Shown here: positions 12,601 to 55,200 of the stretch, one piece after another
Layout of the letters: every line of letters starts with the position of its first letter
How positions within the stretch are numbered: the stretch's first letter is position 1
Assembly (NCBI GenBank): GCA_977030845.1
Contig: OZ365116.1
Location: 20,956,001 to 21,020,000, forward strand
Direction of reading: 5' to 3'
Length of the DNA: 64,000 bases
DNA from: Fimbriosthenelais zetlandica
Taxonomy: Eukaryota
The notes under the pieces: model-generated
Database searches by the model: none
What the model saw: only the letters and a program-made list of their open reading frames with translations
What the model was told of the DNA's origin: nothing
Program-made: the position numbers and the translations under genes

Positions 12601-15198
12601 AAGGTCATCCAAATCATGTTATGTGTAAATATTTATTGATAAAGATTTATCGGTCAACATATAGAGACAGGGAGAATTTGAAACTGGAGAACATCTGCCA
12701 GACTTCCATTTCCAAATGGAATAGTTTTCAACAGTTGAAATGATGCTAAAATATCAACTTCTTTATATGATATGAGTTTGTGGTTGGTATGTGGAACTCA
12801 CTGTCCTTGGACTGGGGCTTTTCTATTAATACCAGATAATCAGTGACGTTGAGGGCGGGTCTGTATACCATGAGGCCTGGTATCATTCTTTCTCACCAGA
12901 AGTCAATTTGGAAGCCTTGTAAGCATCAAAGCCTGACTGATTATGTGGGAGGGACATTCATTACCTCCATAATGAGAAAACTACCCTCACTCCTTGTAAA
13001 CATCTCCCCATGTTGCCCTTCTCATTATCCAGATTTTTCCGGTTCTGTATTTAAATATATTACCCCAAGAACTATATTTATCAACCAATATATTATGACA
13101 AATTGTGGAAATATAAAAGTATCACCATAATATGACAAGGAGTAAGTGAGTAACCTTTTCTGGTCCGATAAAAATGATAGCCAATGCAATATGCTGGGCA
13201 ACTAGGCTTGATGAGCTGTCATTTGAGTAAGAAGATTTATGTCTTGCTAAAAATGACATGAGAAAACTCCCCGAGGAGCTGATGACAGATCAAAGGTGCT
13301 CAGGTAACGAGCGCCAGTTTTTCTCTATTTTTTTGAATCATGAGAAGGGGAAAATATTCTCAATCATTAAGAAGACCTTGGCTTATAGCTGCGTGGCTTT
13401 TTGTATGCGTCAGCTCAGATTTTCATTTATAAATATGATCTAATCCATCATCCAGCATGTGCTGAAGGCCTACCTGTCTAAGTCTGCCCACCTCCCCCTG
13501 CCTCTACCCTGATACAGTGTTATAGATGGCTTGACTGGGAGTTGGGGAGAGAGATTGTGGGGACTCCTTGCTGGGCTGCCTCCAAGGCGCCTCCAAGTGA
13601 TAAGGCCTGAAGTAATGTGTACCAGGTGCTCTCTCCCGGGTCGGATCTGTAATGTTACTGTTGCATTGAAAGTTTAGAACCTGGGTCTTCTATATATTAC
13701 ATGGGTATACACCAAGGGCTATAATCTCTGCTTATATGCCCCAGTCAGAAATGAGTGCCACGTTAGGTTAAATTGCTGTCTGAGATGTATGTGTTTATTC
13801 TATAGTTCGTCTAATAATATGGTTTAAATGGTCTGAAAGTGACGTATAGTGTGACTGTTTAGGCAGGTATGAGTCTGTTGAGCTGGAGTTTCTGGGAACA
13901 TATGCCATGTTTCAAGGTGAAGGGGGAAACCCATCAAATGTTGATGAACTGTTTTTTCGTCCATTAGTCTGGCTTTGTACATCTAGCTGTTAGAGACCAA
14001 ACAGATGCGCCGTCTGACAAAGTAGATGGTATAAAGAATGGCAGGAAGAGGTGATTTTACCTGCCAGAATCCCATTAAGCCTGATCCTCTTATTCAGATG
14101 AGACTACTCTTTTACTACTGCCATCTGGAGATTTTCTCTCTCCAAGATCTGTGTCTATGGCCTCTCTCTACCTGTGGGGTGCATCCCAATCTTAGTACCT
14201 GGTTGAGGGATGAGTTTAGAAGACACCCTTTTGAAATATGTCAGATAATCTGTTATGGAGTTGTGTTTATATTTACCTTTTGTTGTAATTACGATTAACT
14301 TTCCATTTTTTCCAGGATGCTGAAATGAAGACTGAGGTCCTGGACTGGATCGAAGCTGTCATCAAGAAGCCAGTCAACAGGAAGGATCCTTTCGAAAAAG
14401 TGCTTAAGGATGGCACAGTCTTATGCGAGTAAGTTACGACTGTTTGCTCATGAATCATAGATTCTGCTAAATGAATTATGTAATACCGAAGACAAATACC
14501 AGAAAAGAAACTCTCCTAGTATATATAATTTAGACCTTTATGTATTTAAATTGCTACCAGCACTCGCTTGATGATCGTGTAATAATTTAACTGATGATTA
14601 TTTCTCTTTACAGGCTGATAAACGTTTTACAGCCGGGCAGCGTGAAGAGAGTTGCCACCAAGGGCTCTAACTTCCAACTGATGGAGAATATCGCTGCCTT
14701 CCAGAAAGCCATTAAGAAATACGGAGTGCCACAGGAGGAGATCTTCCAGACAGCCGACCTGTTTGAGGCTCGTAATGTGAAGCAGGTCGCTCTCAGTCTC
14801 TTCTGTCTGGGACGCATAGTGAGTCAGAGAGTTCATTTACTCTACCAATAGTTTACCTATTAATTCTACACTCTTCTGTACTATCAAAGAGATTACTATT
14901 AAACAAGCGTATCTATAATTTATCTAAGAATAACTTTCCCAAAAAACATATAACACCCTTTCTCACTATTTCAAGCAAGTAGAATGTAAGTGTAATTGGA
15001 TTTTGACATTTTCAGGCACAAAACAAAGGCTATGACGGGCCTGTCCTTGGTCCAAAGATGGCTGATGCCAACAAGAGAGAATTCACGGAAGAACAAATGA
15101 TGGCTGCCAAGAACGAAGTCAGTCTACAGTATGGGTCTAACAAGGGAGCCTCACAAGCTGGTGTTAGTATGGGTGGCATTAGACACATCGTGGATTAA
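3608..15198 (+). CDS. Calponin/transgelin-family protein (myophilin / muscle protein 20-like), 170 aa, 4 coding exons: 3608-3619, 14316-14428, 14614-14818, 15016-15198
   Basis: Spliced product MAAK|DAEMKTEVLDWIEAVIKKPVNRKDPFEKVLKDGTVLCE|LINVLQPGSVK...FQLMENIAAFQKAIKKYGVPQEEIFQTADLFEARNVKQVALSLFCLGRI|AQNKGYDGPVLGPKMADANKREFTEEQMMAAKNEVSLQYGSNKGASQAGVSMGGIRHIVD*: CH domain plus one calponin-like repeat (LQYGSNKGASQAG). All junctions are GT-AG with consistent phases (0,2,0). The first coding exon is less certain than exons 2-4. Confidence 0.9.
4445..4458. promoter_or_regulatory. RFX X-box motif (GTTGCCATGACAAC), with an adjacent partial X-box at 4432-4441 and an E-box at 4360-4365
   Basis: Exact match to the GTHNYY-AT-RRNAAC X-box consensus inside a locally CpG-rich patch; function untested. 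Confidence 0.35.
6202..6233. repeat. Short tandem repeat, 8-bp unit (CTGACTCC) x4
   Basis: ctgactcc ctgactcc cttactcc ctgactcc. Confidence 0.75.
14316..14428 (+). CDS. Calponin-like exon (CH domain start)
   Basis: ttttttccag|GAT...TGC GA|gtaagt; DAEMKTEVLDWIEAV...LKDGTVLC. Confidence 0.92.
14614..14818 (+). CDS. Calponin-like exon (CH domain core)
   Basis: ctctttacag|G CTG...CGC ATA|gtgagt; matches track ORF 14594..14851. Confidence 0.95.
15016..15198 (+). CDS. Calponin-like last coding exon (calponin repeat, stop)
   Basis: cattttcag|GCA...GAT TAA; GPKMADANKREFTEEQ...LQYGSNKGASQAG. Confidence 0.93.
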   Translation, partial: AQNKGYDGPVLGPKMADANKREFTEEQMMAAKNEVSLQYGSNKGASQAGVSMGGIRHIVD

Positions 15199-15895: not shown

Positions 15896-16912
15896 TTACT
15901 TATCCGGTGAGAGCAACTTGTCATAATATATCATAGTCAGCATGTTGAAAACGCTCAGTGTCGTCCACTTATAGAGGGGGTTAAGGTAGGAATTGGTACG
16001 TGAGCCATAATCATTGGACAAGTAATAGAAGTGCATTGAAACTAAGAGTGGGAAAACCAGCAGAATAGCATTGAAGGCTACAAGATAAATTGTCTTGAAG
16101 GAGAATCCTGTCTTCAGGCTGTCCTCGCTTGCCTCTCCCGATGATTCAATATCAGAAGAGGGCACTGTAGATTTGTCTTTGACTAGATCACTGGACGAGG
16201 ACGTATAGAAAACAAGCGGGTCATATTTCCTGGTCCTTGATTTGACGCTGAACACAATCAGTTGCATTGTGGCAGCAAGAATGAACAGGATTATAGCACT
16301 GCCCACACTGAATAAGAGAGAAGGCATCGGTTTGGTATAAAGACAGAATAGATAAGGCTTGGTCATGCTTGTAGAATCCTTGTATCTCACATTTGGCAGG
16401 TAGGAGAACAAGTCAGGCAGGAAGATGAGCAAAATCACCAAGATATATGGGCTGACGATTCTGGTGACATAAGATCTGGCTTGATTAGTTCCAAAAACGG
16501 CCACGACATGGAAGTGGCGTGCAAGTGCGACTCCCAATATGATTCCCATAGATTTGCACTCAGAGTAAAGTCTAAATTCAGATGTGCACATCACCTCTGA
16601 TTTCAAGTCACTTACTGGGATTAAATAGTGGAAAATATAGATAAAAATAGCCAGGCTGAGTCCACACACCAGGTCCCCAGTGGTGATGAGTGAGAGGAGC
16701 AGCGATGCTCCACTGTTTGCTCGTGTCCTTGTAGGACGACATCCTTGTAGGTGAAGAGATCCAATGTTAAATATAGACAGGATTAACACCGAGGATGTAA
16801 TCAGCCAGAACATCTGGCTATCTGTCCAATATACCAGATTCTCCTCTGGTATTAGCAGCCACTGGGAAGAATTCCCTCCCATGATTTCCCCTCCAATCAT
16901 GGCCCTCTTCAT
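15896..16912 (-). CDS. Divergent rhodopsin-like (class A) 7TM receptor, 338 aa, single coding exon
   Basis: Seven hydrophobic segments; TM1 Asn (SIFN), TM2 Asp (TTGDLVCG), Cys at the top of TM3 (VMC) and in ECL2 (YLFC), TM3 Arg in ARH replacing DRY, TM6 Pro (LVFP), N-glycosylation sequon NSS near the N-terminus, Ser/acidic ICL3. An acceptor at 16959-16958 and an in-frame stop 5' of the ATG define the start. Confidence 0.75.
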   Translation of the reverse strand: MKRAMIGGEIMGGNSSQWLLIPEENLVYWTDSQMFWLITSSVLILSIFNIGSLHLQGCRPTRTRANSGASLLLSLITTGDLVCGLSLAIFIYIFHYLIPVSDLKSEVMCTSEFRLYSECKSMGIILGVALARHFHVVAVFGTNQARSYVTRIVSPYILVILLIFLPDLFSYLPNVRYKDSTSMTKPYLFCLYTKPMPSLLFSVGSAIILFILAATMQLIVFSVKSRTRKYDPLVFYTSSSSDLVKDKSTVPSSDIESSGEASEDSLKTGFSFKTIYLVAFNAILLVFPLLVSMHFYYLSNDYGSRTNSYLNPLYKWTTLSVFNMLTMIYYDKLLSPDK

Positions 16913-18248
16913 CTCAGTTTCTTAACAATGAGACTCGCGTGGCAACACAAACTCCGCCTGAAATGAAAAATATTAACTTAACTTCAAAACGAGAAAAGAA
17001 AGTGTTGTTAATTTGACTGAGTAAACCAGTACTAGTTGTGCTATCTACCGTGACCGTGACCCAGGCTCAGTATACGTGTACACCTGACAATTATATATAA
17101 TAACACGTGTCAACTGGTCCAGCACACCCGAGCTTCACAAACATGTATACCTAAACTAAAAGAAATACTCTTTCTTTATAGTGATAAATGTGACCATACG
17201 TTTAGATGGTAAGAATGTTCAAAATATGTATATTCTGATATTATGCCCGTGTATGTTCCATTAAAGATTTTATGGGGTTTGCAAATTCCTGACAATGTCT
17301 TAGAACACATACCTTGAATCCAATCAGTTCTACTCGGATATTAAATATCTGCGAAGAGGTATTCCTATCAAATTTACCTAAATGTTTCATAGGTCGAGAT
17401 GTTCAAGTGTGTACAGTTGCTAACTTGCTTCTGAGCCCAGACTGACTGTGACTTATGTAGGTACTTTCTCGTGTGCTCGTGGTCAAGGACTTATTATACA
17501 TGTTAGAACACCTTTTGACTCGGACACAGGCCGCAGCAAAGCGGGGGCCCGTTTCAACAGAAATTAACAATGCTATTATTCGCTTTGAAACCGGTTATAG
17601 CAATATCCTTCGGTCAGTAGTTTGTGCTAGGTCATTATAATTGGGGAGGGATGTATTCATACCTGGTCCGACTACTGATGAGGCTTGTTTGGGTTGGCAA
17701 GTTGGCTGACTGGTATGAAATCGGTAATGAAGTTACAAGGTTACAAGATTTGCAACTTGTTGCTTGTAAGTTTCAAATTATGAATTTTACCTCATGGCTA
17801 CATGACAATAATATTAGTATTTATTAATAAATGAATTATACATGTGCGTACACATTTATGTTTCAAGCATAAGATTAAGTACATCCTTCTAAAATACTCA
17901 TAAATGATATGAAATGCCGAGGGCAGTCATAATCTGCTGGTCTGTTCACGTCACCATTTCTGAGGTGGACCTAAAATAGGTTAGACCTCATGTACTGGAC
18001 ATAACACATGAGGTGATAGGTAGGGGAGACCCGGGTGAGTTGTGCCAATTTTCCGATTTTATCCAATATCTTTTAGCATATTCAACTTAGAACTTTGTTA
18101 CTATTATAAAGTAGTACTATTTTTTTACAATATGGGATGGGTAAATGAAATTCAAAGTCATTGGATATCCTACAATTGCCTCATAGCCTACACCTCGCCA
18201 GGAAAGGATGAAGAAGCAATTAACATAAGAAAACTTGATGAACCCTTA

Positions 18249-18722: not shown

Positions 18723-18855
18723 NNNNNNNNNNNNNNNNNNNNNNNNNNNNNNNNNNNNNNNNNNNNNNNNNNNNNNNNNNNNNNNNNNNNNNNNNNNNNN
18801 NNNNNNNNNNNNNNNNNNNNNNNNNNNNNNNNNNNNNNNNNNNNNNNNNNNNNNN
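18723..18855. other. Assembly gap, 133 N
   Basis: Run of N characters. Confidence 1.
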
Positions 18856-20386
18856 GTATTTGGTTTTGTGGAGGACTAAGCATGTTTAAATACCTGGCTA
18901 TAGGAGCTATCTTTACTGTTGGTTTCCATGGTACTCCATCCACGTCAATGATAGAGATGAATGATATGATGCTCATCACCTCTGGGCCTGGTTCTACATG
19001 TGTATCTGGTCTGAATTAATCAATGGTTGGGAGCACGACTGAGCACATAGGTTGAACAGTCAATAACTTACATGTGGTGCGTTAATCTAATGAATCATGC
19101 CATTACGTCACACATAATAAGTTGAAATGAATTATTTTGTGCTATTACAATACTTCAAAATAGCAAATTCCTTATCCCTGTTTGACCCCTTTTCTTTAGA
19201 AACATTTTCTTTAGAAAATTACCAACTTTTCATTAGACTTTCCATCTTCTCATATCCATTACATTAACATCCAAAGGATTTCCTTTGGTGTTAGTTCATC
19301 ATTTATCCAAAACGTATGAATTTTAGGATGTCTCTTATTCCTGCTTGTACATGTGAGGGATTTGAATTGTTTGTTCAAGAATTATAACGTGGTCAGCTAA
19401 CACAGTGACGCTACTGAACAATCATTACAAATCCATGCATGGCTGCTGCTAAGCAACCCATGCGTTATAAACATTAGAAAATCGACCATTGGTCAACAGT
19501 AGTATGGTACTACTCCAATATTCCCATATATTAGGTAATAGAATTTAGATTAAGCATACAGATATTTGTAAGTATATTTCCTGGGGCCCCAGAGTATAAC
19601 ATATGTCCTCGCTTTATCAAAAGAAAGAAAATGTAAATAGAAAATGTGTTCAGATAAGACAATGTTTTATTCACATTTAGTCACATTCAATAATGGATAT
19701 GTAGATGAGCAGAATATTGTATACATGTACATTATTATGCGGCATTCTCCTCAGTACATCACTTTAACAATAATTGTGTACAGATTAATAACTTCATATT
19801 AATAACTCATGAGTGATAATATCTAGATACCAGCTAGTTATAATATCAGGGTGTAAACAAGGCGGTCAAACGCCTGTTTGAATAAATAGCACCTTTTTAG
19901 CCGGGGTGGCTACAATAGTAGAACATGTACACATACAACTCCCTCAGTAGAGTATTAGGGACCAGAATTGGGAAGACTTGGCCACTGAAGATCTAAATAT
20001 TGTAATAATTATTACATGTTTACTACCTATATAATATGTATTGATATAACATGGATTATTACATGTTTACAAGTTCATCTCAGACTCCATTCATATCATT
20101 GATTGATTAATAATATTATATCACAAGCAGTCTACCATACAACCTGGGAGCAGACTCCATGAATGAGCTATAGTATACAGTGTGCAGAAAGCGCAGTCCT
20201 AGATAGACTATGAGCATAGTTAGGAACACAAGTGATTAAGTTAGAAAAAATATACATTAAAATTAAAGTTAAAACCAAATGAGGGCCACGCACCACTGTC
20301 ACACCTTCCATGCTAGTACAGAGTAAGTTGCATCCTTCACGCCACCCCTACCACCATAACAAGCCCCTATTGGAGCACCCCTTCTC

Positions 20387-22000
20387 CTATAGCGATCCAA
20401 TCTCATTGTAGCGTTTTAATTTGTCAGGGAAGTTATCTTTATAGAGTACAGGATCCGCCCTGAACTCGACAGTTTTTAAAGGCATACAGCCATAGATCTC
20501 AGCGAACTTATTGACACATTCAGACCTCTCCACCATGTGGACGAGGTCCGCTGACAGACCGTAGTTCTGACACTCTGGACATTTAAACTTCTGCCGCGGG
20601 GCCACCTTAATGGCCGGCTTACTGGTGAGGTTAGAGATGAGGAAGTTCATGGCGATGTCCTCACAGTTCATATGGTCGTCCACCCACGCCTTGATGTTAC
20701 CAGGCATAGAGTTAGTGTAGAGGTAGCTGTAATACTGCAAGACAAACAATGACATTATAATTCATCATTTCTTTTTAGAGATTATACATATTGTAGAAAT
20801 TATAATTCCAAATCATGGCTACATGTAGTGGTGTGGATTGTGATGAGAGATTGAGCTCTCACCTTGTGGTGGAAGGCAGCGCCAGTGAGGACGATGGAAA
20901 TCTGACTGGTCCACTCTGATTCATAACGCCATCTGTTGGTTACATTGTCCCAAAGATGGAGGCGGGATGGGAAGCCAACCAGGCGGTCCGGGAACTCACG
21001 CCAGACCTGTAACCAGTAATTATACTTACAATCATGTAACATGCATGACATAGTGCTATATTATATAACAACCCAGTGCTGATGATATAATGAAGGAGTG
21101 AAGAACTTGCCTCATATCCAAACTCAATCTCATCAGGGGTTAACATAATGATGTCATCATCTAGAGCTAGGATGGCTTCTGTCTCTATCTCATCATAAGG
21201 GTAGAACCTGGAAGGTTAAATGTGATATCATAAATATAGTATTGAATGCAAAGCAAAGAGGAGGCAAGAATTAGCATAGTCGATGTAACTAGATACTGCT
21301 TTGCAAACTAAAAGTAGATGTTATGTCTCTTACCTATTGCTCAGCTTGTTTTGTCTAGTCTGTACTACCTTCAATGGTTTGCTGATTTTCGGCCACACAC
21401 TCGCTGAAAAGAGATTAAATAATAATTAAATCTTTAATCTCTCAGACGAGCAAAATGACAGATAATGGTCAAGTGTGAGGAGGGATGGAGAGCTACCTTG
21501 AGGTGGAGCCTTCTGTTGATTGTTCCACACCACTAGTACTTTAGTAAGTGAAGGGACCATGGCTACCCGGGTGATCACCCGGAATAGATACTCCAGACGG
21601 TCATAGGTGAGGATGACAGCCGTGAAGCCCATGGTGCGGGGAGGCTGGACAGGCAGGAACAGGGGGTTCATGATGCTAGCCTGAAAATAATCAAAATAAT
21701 ATTGAAGTATGAAGTTTTCTGAATGTAGGAATACATCTTATTATAGAGCAGCACAATTCTGCACTATGACTCACCTTAGCCGGGGATTCGTTCCATTCTT
21801 CATATTTTTTGGCAGCGTAAGGGAAGACTCGGTCATTAATGATCTGTAGGGTAGTCATGGTGATGGCCCTCATGGAGCTGAAGTAAGTCTCCCATATAAA
21901 GCGAGCCTGGAGTCTCAGTGCTTCTACATGACCAGCGCTCATCTTAGACAGAGTGGTGACTACCTGAGGTAGGATATCTTCACGTAGCACCACCGATGCT
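20387..22000 (-). pseudogene. EXT2: Partial duplicate of EXT2 (exons 5'-10': 22000-21775, 21680-21497, 21403-21334, 21207-21111, 21006-20863, 20734-20387); no disabling mutations; may be a functional cassette, a pseudogene or an uncollapsed allele
   Basis: Same exon lengths (226,184,70,97,144,348) and splice dinucleotides as the intact gene; lacks the first four coding exons (TM anchor and most of the GT47 domain). Confidence 0.7.
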
Positions 22001-22567
22001 CTACACAAATATAGATAAAGACAGTTTACAATCATGCTCAAACCCATCTGTGAGGTCTCATAATTCACACTTAAAATCCGGGAGAGGAATGAGTGAAAAA
22101 TTCAAGTACAGAATTCTTGATCCATGAATTACAAGAATAATATCTTCACCTTTTCTCATATTCATTACATTACAATCCAAAGGATTGCCTTTGGTGTTAG
22201 TTCATCATTTTATTCAAAACGTATGAATTTTAGGATGTCTCTTATTCCTGCTTGTACATGTGAGGGATTTGAATTGTTTGTTCAAGAATTATAACGTGGT
22301 CAGCTAACACAGTGAAGCTACTGAACAATCATTACAAATCCATGCATGGCTGCTGCTTAGCAACCCATGCGTTATAAACATTAGAAAATCGACCATTGGT
22401 CAACAGTAGTACGGTACTACTCCAATATTCCCATATATTAGGTAATAGAATTTAGATTAATCATACAGATATTTGTAAGTATATTTTCTGGGGCACCAGA
22501 GTATAACATATGTCCTCGCTTTATCAAAGGAAAGAAAATGTAAAAGGGTGTTCAGATAAGACAATGT

Positions 22568-22573
22568 TTTATT
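22568..22573 (-). terminator. Candidate EXT2 polyadenylation signal (AATAAA); paralogous site at 19666-19671
   Basis: tttatt on + strand ~710 nt past the stop in both copies. Confidence 0.45.
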
Positions 22574-23284
22574 CACATTTAGTCACATTCAATAATGGAT
22601 ATGTAGATGAGCAGAATATTGTATACATGTACATTATTATGCGGCATTCTCCTCAGTACATCACTTTAACAATAATTGTGTACAGATTAATAACTCCATA
22701 TAACTCATGAGTGATAATATCTAGATACCAGCTAGTTATAATATCAGGGTGTAAACAAGGCGGTCAAACGCCTGTTTGAATAAATAGCACCTTTTTAGCC
22801 GGGGTGGCTACAATAGTAGAACATGTACACTTACAACTCCCTCAGTAGAGTATTAGGGTCCAGAATTGGGAAGACTCGGCCACTAAAGATCTAAATATTG
22901 TAATAATTATTACATGTTTACTACCTATATAATATGTATTGATATAACATGGATTATTACATGTTTACAAGTTCATCTCAGACTCCCTTCATATCATTCA
23001 TTGATTAGTAATATTATATCACAAGCAGTCTACCATACAACCTGGGAGCAGACTCCATGAATGAGCTATAGTATACAGTGTGCAGAAAGCGCAGTCCTAG
23101 ATAGACTATGAGCATAGTTAGGAACACAAGTGATTAAGTTAGAAAAAATATACATTAAAATTAAAGTTAAAACCAAATGAGGGCCACGCACCACTGTCAA
23201 ACCTTCCATGCTAGTACAGAGTAAGTTGCTTCCTTCACGCCACCCCTACCACCATAACAAGCCCCTATTGGAGCACCCCTTCTC

Positions 23285-26200
23285 CTATAGCGATCCGATC
23301 TCATTGTAGCGTTTTAATTTGTCAGGGAAGTTATCTTTATAGAGCACAGGATCCGCCCTGAACTCGACAGTTTTTAAAGGCATACAGCCATAGATCTCAG
23401 CGAACTTATTGACACATTCAGACCTCTCCACCATGTGGACCAGGTCCGCTGACAGACCGTAGTTCTGACACTCTGGACATTTAAACTTCTGCCGCGGGGC
23501 CACCTTAATGGCCGGCTTACTGGTGAGGTTAGAGATGAGGAAGTTCATGGCGATATCTTCACAGTTCATGTGGTCGTCCACCCACGCCTTGATATTACCA
23601 GGCATAGAGTTAGTGTAGAGGTAGCTGTAATACTGCAAGGCAAACACAGAAATTATAATTCTTTTTAGACATTCTACATATTGTAGAAATTATAATTTCA
23701 AATCACTACTATATGTAGTGGTATGGATTGTGATGAGAGATTAAGCTCTCACCTTGTGGTGGAAGGCAGCGCCAGTGAGGACGATGGAAATCTGACTGGT
23801 CCACTCTGATTCATAACGCCATCTGTTGGTTACATTGTCCCAAAGATGGAGGCGGGATGGGAAGCCAACCAGACGGTCCGGGAACTCACGCCAGACCTGA
23901 AACCAGTAATTATACTTACAATCATGTAACATGCATGACATAGTGCTATATTATATAACAACCCAGTGCTGATGATATAATGAAGGAGTGAAGAACTTGC
24001 CTCATATCCAAACTCAATCTCATCAGGGGTTAACATAATGATGTCATCATCTAGAGCTAGGATGGCTTCTGTCTCTATCTCATCATAGGGGTAGAACCTG
24101 GAAGGTTAAATGTGATGTGATATCATAAATAGTGTACTGAATCCAAAGCAAAGAGGAGGCAATAATTAGCAGAGTCGATGGAACTAGATACTACAGTACT
24201 TTGCAAACTAAAAGTAGACGTGGTGTCCCTTACCTATTGCTCAGCTTGTTTTGTCTAGTCTGTACTACCTTCAATGGTTTGCTGATTTTGGGCCACACAC
24301 TCGCTGAAAAGAGATGAAATAATAATTAAATCTTTAATCTCTCAGACGAGCAAAATGACAAAGAGTTAGTGGTCAAGTGTGAGGAGGGATGGAGAGCTAC
24401 CTTGAGGTGGAGCCTTCTGTTGATTGTTCCACACCACTAGTACTTTAGTAAGTGAAGGGACCATGGCTACCCGGGTGATCACCCGGAATAGATACTCCAG
24501 ACGATCATAGGTGAGGATGACAGCCGTGAAGCCCATGGTGCGGGGAGGCTGGACAGGCAGGAACAGGGGGTTCATGATGCTAGCCTGAAAATAATCAAAA
24601 TAATATTGAAGTATGAAGTTTTCTGAATGTAGGAATACATCTTATTATAGAGCAGCACAATTCTGCACTATGACTCACCTTAGCCGGGGATTCGTTCCAT
24701 TCTTCATATTTTTTGGCAGCGTAAGGGAAGACTCGGTCATTAATGATCTGTAGGGTAGTCATGGTGATGGCCCTCATGGAGCTGAAGTAAGTCTCCCATA
24801 TAAAGCGAGCCTGGAGTCTCAGTGCTTCTACATGACCCGCGCTCATCTTAGACAGAGTGGTGACTACCTGAGGTAGGATATCTTCACGTAGCACCACCGA
24901 TGCTCTACACAAATATAGATAAAGACAGTTTTACAACCCATCTGCGAGGTCCCATAATTCCCACTTAAAATCCGAGAGAGGAATGAGTACAAAATTCAAG
25001 TACAGAATTCTTGATATATATATATATAATTCATGGAGAAAATGAATTACAAGAATAATATCTTCACCTTTTCCAATCAATAACTTCCTCAAATGGAGGC
25101 ACGTAACCATCAGCGATTATAACAGGAATACATCCAGCCATGAGAGCATCAAACAAGACGGTCTGACCTAGCCGTGCACCGCGCACCACCAGACAGAATG
25201 TAGCATCCTGTAATACAAAACATCTCATCATAAAGCATCATTATAAATGATAATAGTTTGTGAACTATCAAGTTCACGATTGTGGAATCAAATTTGGTGG
25301 ACACGTGATGCTGACCTGGAGGATATCAGGATAGTTATACACTTCACCAGAAGGCGTGTGACATCTCTGAGTAAAGTTTCCTTCCTCACATCGGTCGAGG
25401 AGGAGGAAGGTGGGATGGTGCTGTGCTAACAGAGACAGCTCTTCATAATATTCTGAATGGATTCCAAACTGAGATGATACCAAAAGCCAGCGACGATCAC
25501 TCCTGAAATCAAGAAATATATGGAATACTCGAAGTGAAAATCAATTCAAATGTATGGAAATAGTATTAAGATGACCCCTCTCCCCCGCCCAGCCCGGATT
25601 GGCGGTATAATACCTGGTATAGTCTGTTAGTTTGGCGTTGACAGTGAGTGGATTGTAGATGGGTATAGACACATCATAACCATATCTATATGACCAGGTT
25701 GAGAAGCCACCACCGGCCATGATGGCGTGGTCATGGTTCACATCTAATGTTGTATTGTAGTCCGGAGTTGAACCAGGCAGCATGTTAAACAACAGATGAT
25801 TGATGCCTTCATTCCACCTGAAGACAAAAGAAAATCAGATAAAGAATATGGTATATGAATTCTATTCTACCCTTCAATAGTTCAAATCCTTTTATTGTGT
25901 ATTGGGTAATGCTAACTCATTATAATTTAACCAGGGATGAATATATTTACCTTGGCAGAGTGGCCAGTATCTTTGAAGTCTCCTTCAAGCGAATATTGTT
26001 CTGATTTAAGAGATCTAATGTAGGCAGGAAGAGACAAGCTCTGTCTGGATCTGTGGTATAATAGATACTGTCCATCACAGTCTGAATGACCTCATGAAAC
26101 TCTTTAGAGAAAGGCAGACTGACAGGTAGTCCTGTCTCGTCCTTATACTCCACTGTAGGGTAGATATAGACACTGATTCTGTTATCATCATTATAGCCGC

Positions 26201-26522
26201 AGTGATACACATCAAAACACGAGTGGAAGGTACATTCCTCATTACGGGGCTTGGCCAGGCCACTTTCCGCTGTGATCACAACTTCTTTTGGGTACTCTAC
26301 ATTACGTCTATTGATGTCTTCACTTTCCTCTGAAGCATGGGGCCAAAACTGTAATATTATCACTCCAGTGAAGAAGAAGGTGACAGCGACTATAGATAGT
26401 ACCCAGAGATAAAATTGTTTCTGTTTTGGTGGACGTCGAGTCTGTATCCTCTCCCTGGTCTTGGAGTCAGAAGGGATGTATACTCTCTCTGACAGATGGA
26501 CATTCCTCGACTTTAAGTCCAT
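23285..26522 (-). CDS. EXT2: Exostosin-2 (heparan sulfate co-polymerase subunit), 723 aa, 10 coding exons: 26522-25951, 25817-25614, 25502-25316, 25207-25068, 24904-24679, 24584-24401, 24303-24234, 24097-24001, 23896-23753, 23632-23285
   Basis: Type II TM then [140 protein letters not shown]...IGSL, all recognisable EXT2 motifs. Exon lengths sum to 2172 nt with consistent phases; one intron is GC-AG. Confidence 0.97.
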
Positions 26523-51846: not shown

Positions 51847-52273
51847 GAAGGCAGGGTGAGAGGGGTAGAGGCATGTGAAGGCAGGGTGAGAGGGGGTAGA
51901 GGCATGTGAAGGCAGGGTGAGAGGGGGTAGAGGCATGTGAAGGCAGGGTGAGAGGGGTAGAGGCATGTGAAGGCAGGGTGAGAGGGGGTAGAGGCATGTG
52001 AAGGCAGTGTGAGAGGGGTAGAGGCATGTGAAGGCAGGGTGAGAGGGGTAGAGGCATGTGAAGGCTGGGTGAGAGGGGGTAGAGGCATGTGAAGGCAGGG
52101 TGAGAGGGGTAGAGGCATGTGAAGGCAGGGTGAGAGGGGTAGAGGCATGTGAAGGCAGGCTGAAGGAGGTAGAGGCATGTGAAGGCAGGGTGAGAGGGGG
52201 TAGAGGCATGTGAAGGCTGGGTGAGAGGGGGTAGAGGCATGTGAAGGGAGGGTGACAGGGGGTAGAGGCATGT
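51847..52273. repeat. G-rich minisatellite, 14 copies of a 30/31-bp unit GAAGGCAGGGTGAGAGGGG(G)TAGAGGCATGT
   Basis: Units parsed by hand; length differs only in the G4/G5 run, plus a few point variants; no spacers. Confidence 0.97.
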
Positions 52274-55200
52274 GAATGTGGAGGGTAGACGGATGTAAGA
52301 TCATTAACAGAAGGAAGTGCTCCAGGCACTGGTTCAAGATGGTGGATGGATGAGTGGCCGGGAGGAGGAGGACATGACCCTGGAGGAGGAGCAGGAGGAT
52401 CTATCATCATACACTGTCTCTCTACTTGTCACTGCCACCTTCTTAATCACACACCATTGATAGCTTCTATACTTCTCTATATGAGGATGTCTTGACTGAT
52501 GATAATATATCAGCATTATCTCTATCTATGTTGGCATCATGTACATGGTCCGCATATAGTTAGCTTCTCCCTCTATCTACTCTTCACACACTTTCTTTAC
52601 AGAATGTATATGAATTTCGCCGCTATAAAGTTTGAGAGGTAATCCCGTGAGGGAGTTTTTCACTCCTGCACACCCGTTGGTCCGTGTATATATATGGTGG
52701 TGCCATTTTCCCCCTGCCCCCGTTCCCAGCTCTAAAGCTGCAACATCAGCAGGAAATGTGAATGATGTGTCTTTGCTGACGAGATGTGAGTCCTGGGAAT
52801 CACGCTCTGGTTTGGAAGTGAAAAGCTCCTGAAAAATTTGGTTTCTCAGGGATTTAGATCAATCTTTGTGGAAGCGAGATTTCATGTTATCATATGGCTG
52901 GGTGATTGTACGCCTTGCTTCTGTGAAGCTTATAAGAAGCAAGCTTGAAATGGCAGCTTGTGGAATTGATCTGGGAACAGGTAGTGACATGGCGAGCCGT
53001 TACCACTTCTCCCGGGAGAATATCCATCATATATCTTCCCACCGACCAGGTTCCATGTCTTGTACAAGCACTTTCTGCTGATATATATGTGGCGGATAGC
53101 TTGCTTCCTTCCGGTGTACCATTTTCCTACTATATATAGCCATCCTGTACGTCCCTGGGGGATGCCCCTCCGAGCTGCTCCTACACTTAGATTGTTTGCT
53201 CAATTACAAGCAGAGATATTTTTACCGCGAGAAAACTTTGATCTTACTGTGACAGCGTGTCCACCTAAATCCGTGCAGTCCGGTGAACATCCATTTCACT
53301 TGTTTCAGCTCATATTATTCTGTGCACAATTCATTTTTCTTTGCTACTTGCGGAGCAAAGTGAAACGTCCAATATATCTTAGCCCGGGTGACTCCCATGG
53401 CAGGTCAGCAGTGAGAAAGGGAAGGATCTATGTCTGTGACTCGGAGAAGGCACATCTAATCCATGGTCAGCTCACCACAGCTCAGCTGGCAGGGCCGTGA
53501 TCCTTGCTCCGGCCCACCAGCCATTTGTCTCTTTCTGTGGCTTTAGTGTGCTGTGAGGAAGACCTAATCCCTCGACACCACCGCCAGGTTTTCACCTTTA
53601 TGCATACAGTTTAATCAGGCACACCCACTAAGCTTACACAGGCTTGCTAAGCTTGGCCACAGTATGTTGCCTTGTGGGATGCAACTCTGCAAACAGGACT
53701 TACTGGGTGTAGCTGCACTGGTCGTACCAGGCTCCAGGCTTTGTCAGCCTCCAGTCACACATTTGTGTATGGATTTTGTCCTGTCACTGGTCTTTGGTCT
53801 CAGATTAGTCACATATTAGTTCTGCTATATGATTTATACATGTCCTAAAGCCTATTCAAAATTGATGGATCAGGACTGTCGGCACCCATGAACTGGGCAG
53901 GTAGCAAGGTCCTGAACTATGTACATGAATCATGGTGAAAAATGAATTATATGTCCAACTGCCATAAAATGAAGGAATAAAAATGTCGGTATGGGAGATA
54001 TCTCGGGAGATATATATCGTATTCAAGTGAGGCTTTTATACAAACTTTCTACTCAACAAATGAAAAATATCTCATATGTGCACAATGCAATATTGGGGAT
54101 ACTTTGCTGGGAGGGTGAGCTGAGCCCATAACCTCATCGTCACTAAATCAGATCATGGACTTAGCCACAGTTTCCATCTCATCCAATCGCCCAGCCTGGC
54201 GTTAGATAGGTCGTCAATATGATCATATAGCCTTGCCTTGCCTATCACGTTTCTCTGCACTATACGCCTCTGCCAGCTTGGGGTTACAATCTGCATACGT
54301 GAAGCCACGATTAATGTGGGTAAAAATCAGGGGCTGGCAGTTAGGGCAGCGAAGGCCCTGGCCCTATAATGCTCCTCCTTGGCAGGATTGTAAGCTTTCC
54401 TGCCATCCTGTAAGCAATTTGTCCTCCAGCACTTCGTGAACCCAGCCAAGTGTGGGCAGGCCCTGGATGAGTCTTACCTCCATACACACTCGTATCTTCC
54501 ACCTTTCCCAGCCTATCAGGGCGGCATTTATCATATACTTAGAGGTAAGTGGTACAAGAGGAAATACAGGGAAGATGTGGCCATTGTTGTGAGAATTTGA
54601 TTGGAAGCAAGAGGCTGGTGTGGTGCAGCAGCTCCCCGGCCTCCTCCACATATTAGATTCATCATCGTCCTGTGTAAAGCATATATCTGCCTCCAGGTCT
54701 CACCAGTAAAGTGGAACCTCTTCTGATAAGGCTGACAATTGCTGGCTCTGTTTGTCCTGCCTGGAGGAGGGCAGAGTCAGAATTGGTATCCGATATAACT
54801 GGTTACTGCCTGCCAGCATCACTGCCCCTCCAGGCTGCCCTTTCAGGCTGAAAGCAAACTGGAGATAAAGGCACGGAGTACATTCTGACTGAGGGCAATG
54901 TATTTAACCCCCGCTTTCTTGCATGATAGATCGACATAAATATATATTCAATGAAGTCGATGGAATAAAAAGAGTTCTACATTTTTATTGCTTATCTCTC
55001 GTATTGAATACATCTTAAACTGATACCAAATGTAGATAATTCATTTACGGTGATTCACGATTAGATACCCGATATTTATTCTGCAGTTTATATCCAATTT
55101 CTTAACCTAAATAATTAAGCTTTTAGTTATTATTTTTAGGCGAGCGGAAATCCATAGCATCTAATTCTTCAGATGTATTATCAGAAGCAAATGTTCCATG

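Follow-up and report, generated by a model that had tools for sequence, protein, structure and literature searches.

A tandemly repeated 3' half of an EXT2 gene and its probable origin as two alleles

An EXT2 gene with a second copy of its 3' half

The 64-kb window (the whole stretch of DNA analysed) contains an EXT2 gene on the minus strand, the 3' half of which lies in a direct 2.9-kb tandem repeat of two head-to-tail units, unit A and unit B. Exons 1 to 4 (E1-E4) together with unit B make up a complete 10-exon gene encoding 723 amino acids. An earlier note on this DNA had described a copy downstream of the intact gene, which holds, with the correction that the gene runs on the minus strand, so that unit B completes the gene and unit A is extra. 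The features, in the order in which the gene is read, are:

25068-26522, minus strand: EXT2 exons 1 to 4, the unique 5' half (GT47 region), placed by tblastn with beetle EXT2 P0003, GT-AG boundaries and PF03016
26522-25951 (E1), 25817-25614 (E2), 25502-25316 (E3), 25207-25068 (E4), minus strand: exons of the 5' half, in an open 723-aa frame
22153-25073, minus strand: unit B, the gene-completing copy (PF09258; closest solved structure, human EXT2)
24904-24679 (E5), 24584-24401 (E6), 24303-24234 (E7), 24097-24001 (E8, GC donor), 23896-23753 (E9), 23632-23285 (E10, TAG stop), minus strand: exons of unit B
22573 and 22214, minus strand: starts of the first and second AATAAA of unit B
22148-22155, minus strand: junction, with the exon 4 remnant (last 6 nt, GAAAAG) and GT donor
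19247-22152, minus strand: unit A, the promoter-less downstream copy, whose 356 encoded residues match those of unit B despite 12 synonymous differences
22000-21775 (E5), 21680-21497 (E6), 21403-21334 (E7), 21207-21111 (E8, GC donor), 21006-20863 (E9), 20734-20387 (E10), minus strand: exons of unit A
19671, minus strand: start of the AATAAA of unit A
18856-19246, no strand: unique 391 bp separating the N run from unit A, present once in the assembly and without similarity to the units
18723-18855, no strand: run of 133 N, with no other such run in the window or in another 200 kb sampled from the same chromosome

Human EXT2 is the GT47 plus GT64 subunit of the heparan sulfate polymerase, and both domains were recovered here. 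PF03016 matched E1, E2 and E4 (60.8 bits for E4, against a cut-off of 33.4), and PF09258 matched E6, E8, E9 and E10 of unit B and E10 of unit A. The last exon scored 177 bits as EXT2, above EXTL3 (105), EXT1 (79) and EXTL2 (46). The best full-length matches among stored proteins were the EXT2 set recovered with the beetle protein, several of them named exostosin-2; most of the homologues retrieved with beetle EXT2 were insect EXT2 proteins, to which the gene is 54-58% identical over the aligned region. Elsewhere in the window, a 338-aa ORF at 15896-16912 gave no match. As in human EXT2 (PDB 7SCH/7SCJ/7ZAY chain B), the predicted protein has two domains, PF03016 followed by PF09258, with a DDD motif in GT64. 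This motif falls at residues 544-546 of the 723-aa model in both copies, in agreement with the claim that the whole GT64 domain and its motif had been copied, and GlcNAc transfer by human EXT2 uses D538/D540 (PMC9675754). Unlike its human counterpart, the protein is an invertebrate orthologue of 723 aa from a compact 3.2-kb gene.

The anatomy of the repeat, claimed as a unit of six exons, 3'UTR and polyA signal, was found as described. Each unit holds six exons, a 3'UTR of approximately 715 nt with AATAAA, and approximately 400 nt beyond it, with AATAAA lying 712 and 716 nt past the TAG stop codon in the two units. The claim that the copy keeps intact frames and splice sites was likewise borne out, with all acceptors and donors intact in both units, the GC donor of E8 included, and with an open 723-aa frame also obtained when E1-E4 are joined to unit A, which itself has neither a promoter nor exons 1 to 4. 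The retention of introns rules out a retrocopy. The units are 96.2% identical over 2890 columns (19247-22121 against 22153-25015), and their final 32 nt are identical (22124-22155 and 25042-25073). Within the 447-Mb assembly the copy number of the repeat is exactly two, units A and B only, and homology ends sharply on either side of the repeat.

Silent divergence between the units

All 12 coding differences between the units are synonymous over 1069 coding nt, and the encoded proteins are identical. Divergence is 5.1% at synonymous sites, 5.4-6.9% in introns, 2.1% in the 3'UTR and downstream sequence, and 1.1% in the coding sequence as a whole, consistent with the many substitutions and indels reported in the earlier note for introns and UTR. 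A drifting promoter-less copy would be expected to have gathered about 21 replacements, against none observed (Poisson P(0) = 5e-10). Constraint is thus visible in both copies, as in alleles, rather than relaxed in the promoter-less copy as a true duplication would lead one to expect. The differences consist of clean substitutions and multi-base indels rather than homopolymer errors; both units are therefore accurate sequences of distinct molecules, and an error-derived (homotype) duplicate is ruled out on the same grounds.

Without a single replacement between the units, an old duplication is excluded. That unit A should be the decaying pseudogene fragment of such an event, as its missing promoter and first four exons might suggest, is refuted for practical purposes by the substitution pattern: the probability that 12 of 12 differences are silent under free drift is 4.8e-6, and at 5.1% silent divergence the coding sequence is free of replacements, frameshifts and stops and has lost no splice site.

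The same constraint could be read as the mark of a real duplication kept by selection, in which the exon 4 donor is spliced to E5 of either unit B or unit A, the latter being used when the unit B polyA site is bypassed, with both units translated and both under purifying selection. None of the coding differences alters the protein, unit A retains all six acceptors and all five donors, down to the unusual GC donor of E8, its exons continue the frame of E1-E4, and it has an AATAAA of its own, all of which would fit such a use. However, identical products leave nothing for selection to favour, two AATAAA signals of unit B stand upstream of unit A, relatives have a single 3' half, and allelic variation accounts for the pattern more simply. 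We therefore consider an alternative 3' cassette very improbable. An ancient conserved two-cassette gene is ruled out by the single 3' half of relatives; wherever the downstream flank of a relative was long enough to judge, a second 3' half was absent. Looking up the last-exon ORF of each unit in independent assemblies gave no exact match, and a metagenome scan returned distant relatives only, at no more than 86% amino-acid identity.

The junction, the N run and the origin of the repeat

The right breakpoint (25073/25074) falls within exon 4, 6 nt from the end of that exon, and unit A thus opens with GAAAAG and the exon 4 GT donor. On the plus strand, TTC at 22153-22155 is the same as the unit start at 19247-19249, giving 3 nt of microhomology at the join. 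As had been claimed, the junction itself (22152/22153) has no N, and the gap placed some 390 bp from the left end corresponds to the N run, 391 bp from the repeat. This run could be an assembly gap or a mask; it is the only one in 264 kb, comprising the 64-kb window and 20 stretches of 10 kb from the same chromosome. The idea of a conserved small RNA gene hidden in it gained no support, Rfam having found nothing in the flanks of the run. The unique 391 bp and unit A would together make a block of 3.3 kb that extends from the N run to the junction. The largest indel that separates the units measures 24 nt and carries an AT microsatellite; unit A ends 32 nt beyond it, just within conserved exon 4. 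Because the left flank is unique and homology does not extend beyond the unit, unequal crossing-over at flanking repeats or transposons was rejected.

Judged from the sequence, the two units are probably alleles of a single EXT2 3' half from a heterozygous individual, placed head-to-tail by the assembly pipeline; both the allelic nature of the differences and the way in which the pipeline joined them are what we infer. In such a heterotype false duplication, a short block from one haplotype (18856-22152, with the N run on its left) would have been put before the contig of the other haplotype. That long contig would start at 22153, and the 2.9-kb overlap would have been left unmerged owing to approximately 4% divergence and indels, and no Ns would have stood at the join, whether it was left as it was or closed. 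On this reading the animal would carry one ordinary 10-exon, 723-aa EXT2 gene. The ratio of 12 silent to no replacement differences is what purifying selection on two alleles would be expected to leave. An N run close to the boundary would be expected if both haplotype contigs had stopped at one hard spot, and we estimate the chance of finding one within 391 bp at about 1-2% if the two were unrelated; should the run prove to be a mask rather than a gap, the allelic reading may be weakened. Diverged haplotype paths would also be expected to rejoin where unit A ends, in conserved exon 4. The single 3' half of those relatives with sufficient downstream flank points the same way. The EXT2 3'-half duplication of the earlier note therefore stands in its anatomy, while as a biological event the internal evidence leans to the alternative which that note had itself raised, an uncollapsed second haplotype.

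Among duplication errors, heterotype false duplications form the main class even in modern assemblies, and most of them lie on one scaffold (PMC9516828). The locus resembles them in that part of a gene is copied beside itself on one scaffold, with heterozygous-looking differences and an N run nearby, the outcome being a spurious extra gene fragment. It differs from the typical case in the position of the N run, which lies 391 bp outside the pair and not between the copies. A gap between the pair is a main mark of same-scaffold false duplications (Ko et al. 2022, Genome Biol 23:205, PMC9516828), frequent but not strictly required, and its absence here counts against two alleles. The assembly continues over long distances without gaps (one N run in the window, none in the sampled 200 kb), which suggests that it was built from long reads. 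In long-read assemblies a junction internal to a contig is normally carried by reads, which likewise counts against the allelic reading. A further point against it is that the 200 kb sampled contained no second diverged tandem pair of kb scale, so that artefacts of this kind are not frequent in the assembly.

A real duplication is favoured chiefly by the clean, gapless junction with its sharp edges and 3 nt of microhomology. Partial-gene tandem duplications arising through microhomology are seen segregating in animal populations; such copies start identical, after which the promoter-less one drifts. The present repeat is like them in being a kb-scale head-to-tail unit with no flanking repeats at its breakpoints, 3 nt of microhomology, and one breakpoint inside the gene, which is therefore copied in part; unlike them, its copies are approximately 4% apart without any amino-acid difference. 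A young tandem duplication, maybe still segregating, could reconcile these features if its two units derive from alleles that already existed, microhomology having linked the unit's end on one homologue to its start on the other, with unit A a promoter-less passenger without function of its own. Such an inter-homologue origin would explain the silent pattern without selection on unit A, and it agrees with the clean sequence of both copies, with the continuous junction, which in view of the long gap-free stretches may be supported by reads, and with the lack of a gap between the pair. It requires, however, a rarer route than sister-chromatid or within-chromatid events, which give initially identical copies, and it leaves the nearby N run to coincidence. 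Joining two haplotype contigs in silico would give an identical sequence, and nothing in the sequence specifically favours the young duplication, which we regard as possible but rather unlikely.

Consequences for reading the locus

Taken at face value, the locus would be scored as a gained gene or a partial 'EXT2-like' one, and could feed claims of an expanded heparan-sulfate machinery or of selection on untranslated copies. Treating the units as probably allelic avoids such claims. If the duplication were real, it would be an ordinary young partial-gene duplication, and only the unlikely use of both units as alternative 3' ends would be notable, with a duplicated terminal cassette that contains the GT64 catalytic domain in full. 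The 12:0 ratio of silent to replacement differences also serves as an inexpensive warning, obtainable without reads, for similar tandem pairs elsewhere in the assembly.

The EXT2 gene model and its repeated 3' half

Self-comparison showed a direct tandem repeat, 19247-22121 against 22153-25015, with 96.2% identity over 2890 columns, where a head-to-tail repeat of about 2.9 kb had been claimed. The ends of the two units (22124-22155 and 25042-25073) share an identical 32 nt beyond an indel-rich patch, and outside both units similarity is at background at once. The trinucleotide TTC (19247-19249 and 22153-22155) is common to unit start and end, giving the junction at 22152/22153 a 3-nt microhomology. 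The window's only N run (18723-18855, 133 N) lies 391 bp left of the repeat and the junction contains no Ns, in agreement with the earlier note, which had placed a gap about 390 bp from the left end and described the junction as N-free. In the whole assembly (447 Mb, 79 sequences) the two units are the only copies, and as such a separate haplotig is absent.

The EXT2 model, built by tblastn with beetle EXT2 (P0003) as guide and from GT-AG boundaries, has ten exons (E1-E10) encoding 723 aa.

Exons of EXT2 and of the repeated 3' half
26522-25951, minus strand, E1 (tblastn and GT-AG)
25817-25614, minus strand, E2 (tblastn and GT-AG)
25502-25316, minus strand, E3 (tblastn and GT-AG)
25207-25068, minus strand, E4 (tblastn and GT-AG)
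Within unit B (22153-25073), minus strand, E5-E10 of the gene, TAG stop at 23285
22000-20387, minus strand, duplicate set of E5-E10 in unit A (19247-22152)

Unit B completes the gene, and unit A, downstream of unit B's polyA signals, is a promoter-less copy. Pfam assigns the 5' exons to a GT47 domain and those of the repeat to GT64, and the last exon matches human EXT2 at 177 bits, EXTL3 at 105 and EXT1 at 79. The DDD motif occupies residues 544-546; its counterpart DxD in human EXT2 (D538/D540) is required for GlcNAc transfer (PMC9675754). Neither unit has lost a splice acceptor or donor, and AATAAA follows the stop after 712 nt in unit B and 716 nt in unit A, with either unit running about 400 nt further. 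The exons, splice sites, GT64 domain with its DDD motif and polyA signal described earlier were thus all recovered, but not the strand, the gene lying on the minus strand. The right breakpoint (25073/25074) falls inside E4 by 6 nt, so that at the junction the minus strand reads GAAAAG and then the GT donor of E4. We note that the donor of the intron after E8 is GC rather than GT in both units (GAG|GCAAGT; 21105-21110 and 23995-24000, minus strand), and that unit B has a second AATAAA at 22214, 1071 nt past the stop, which is missing from unit A through a C/T difference at 19307.

Divergence between the units

Between the two units there are 38 transitions and 37 transversions, along with nine indels of 1-24 nt, bearing out the many intron and UTR differences described earlier. 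These are clean differences rather than homopolymer slips, and both units are therefore accurate sequences from two distinct molecules.

Divergence between units A and B
Synonymous sites, 5.1%
Internal introns, 5.4%
Intron-4 piece, 6.9%
3'UTR and downstream, 2.1%
All CDS, 1.1%

All 12 coding differences over 1069 nt are synonymous and at third positions, and the 356 encoded residues are the same in both units. An old duplication in which unit A is a decaying pseudogene fragment is virtually excluded by this pattern: drift of a dead fragment predicts about 21 replacements where none is seen, and the probability of 12 silent changes out of 12, had unit A been dead since duplication, is 4.8e-6. 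Three readings fit the substitutions: two alleles joined in assembly, a recent real duplication between homologues, or a real duplication with both units translated. The last of these is improbable. E1-E4 joined to unit A do form an open frame, but the product would be identical to the normal protein, and the polyA signals of unit B precede unit A. Furthermore, in eight relatives whose sequence extends 2.4-7.3 kb downstream, the 3' half is single without exception.

Alleles in tandem or a recent duplication

An erroneous join of haplotype contigs is an unequal crossover in silico, and as such the first two readings predict exactly the same sequence. We consider it probable that units A and B are two alleles of one locus set in tandem by the assembler, since the units differ as alleles do and an N run is close by; misassembly of a heterozygous locus is more likely than a biological duplication. 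Both haplotype contigs would end at one hard spot; 18856-22152 would be a 3.3-kb piece from one haplotype, followed from 22153 onwards by the other haplotype's long contig. An N run beside the repeat is natural where both contigs stop at one such spot. Another 200 kb sampled from the window's chromosome, as 20 stretches of 10 kb each, contained no N runs and no other kb-scale diverged tandem pairs. Apart from the EXT2 pair, the only repeats seen in the 264 kb including the window were minisatellites of an ordinary kind and a few small ones in two copies, and its single N run is the one 391 bp from the repeat; we estimate a 1-2% chance of such proximity were the two unrelated. Unit A ends 32 nt past the largest indel between the units, barely within conserved exon 4, a place at which the paths of two diverged haplotypes would come together again. 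Among duplication errors, heterotype false duplications predominate, and in recent assemblies they are mostly on the same scaffold (PMC9516828).

A real recent duplication between two homologues, the units having begun as two alleles, is a less likely but serious alternative. It is favoured by the gapless junction, since a gap between the pair is a main mark of false duplications (Ko et al., PMC9516828), and by that junction being clean and microhomologous. The long stretches free of gaps point to long reads, and a junction within a contig normally has the support of such reads; the N run might be a mask, and its flanks gave no Rfam matches. Exact look-ups found no other contigs with unit-specific last-exon ORFs, and a metagenome scan returned distant relatives only. 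Among the metagenome contigs, five (L023, L026, L027, L028 and L048) carry intronless EXT2 relatives as a single unbroken match, and are probably transcript-derived or from environmental intron-poor eukaryotes.

Neighbouring features

Left of the N run, a SINE- or MITE-like dispersed repeat of about 170 nt (~18020-18186) has at least 40 copies of 87-90% identity on many chromosomes of the assembly, many of them clustered at ~7.4-9.1 Mb on the window's own chromosome. An intronless 338-aa ORF with several hydrophobic stretches (15896-16912, minus strand) had no Pfam match and no homologue among 5.8 billion proteins, and could represent either an orphan membrane protein or no gene. A calponin/transgelin-type gene (14594-15198, plus strand) has a CH domain exon (PF00307) followed by a calponin repeat exon (PF00402), and 51847-52276 is a G-rich minisatellite with about 14 copies of a 31-nt unit at 94% identity.
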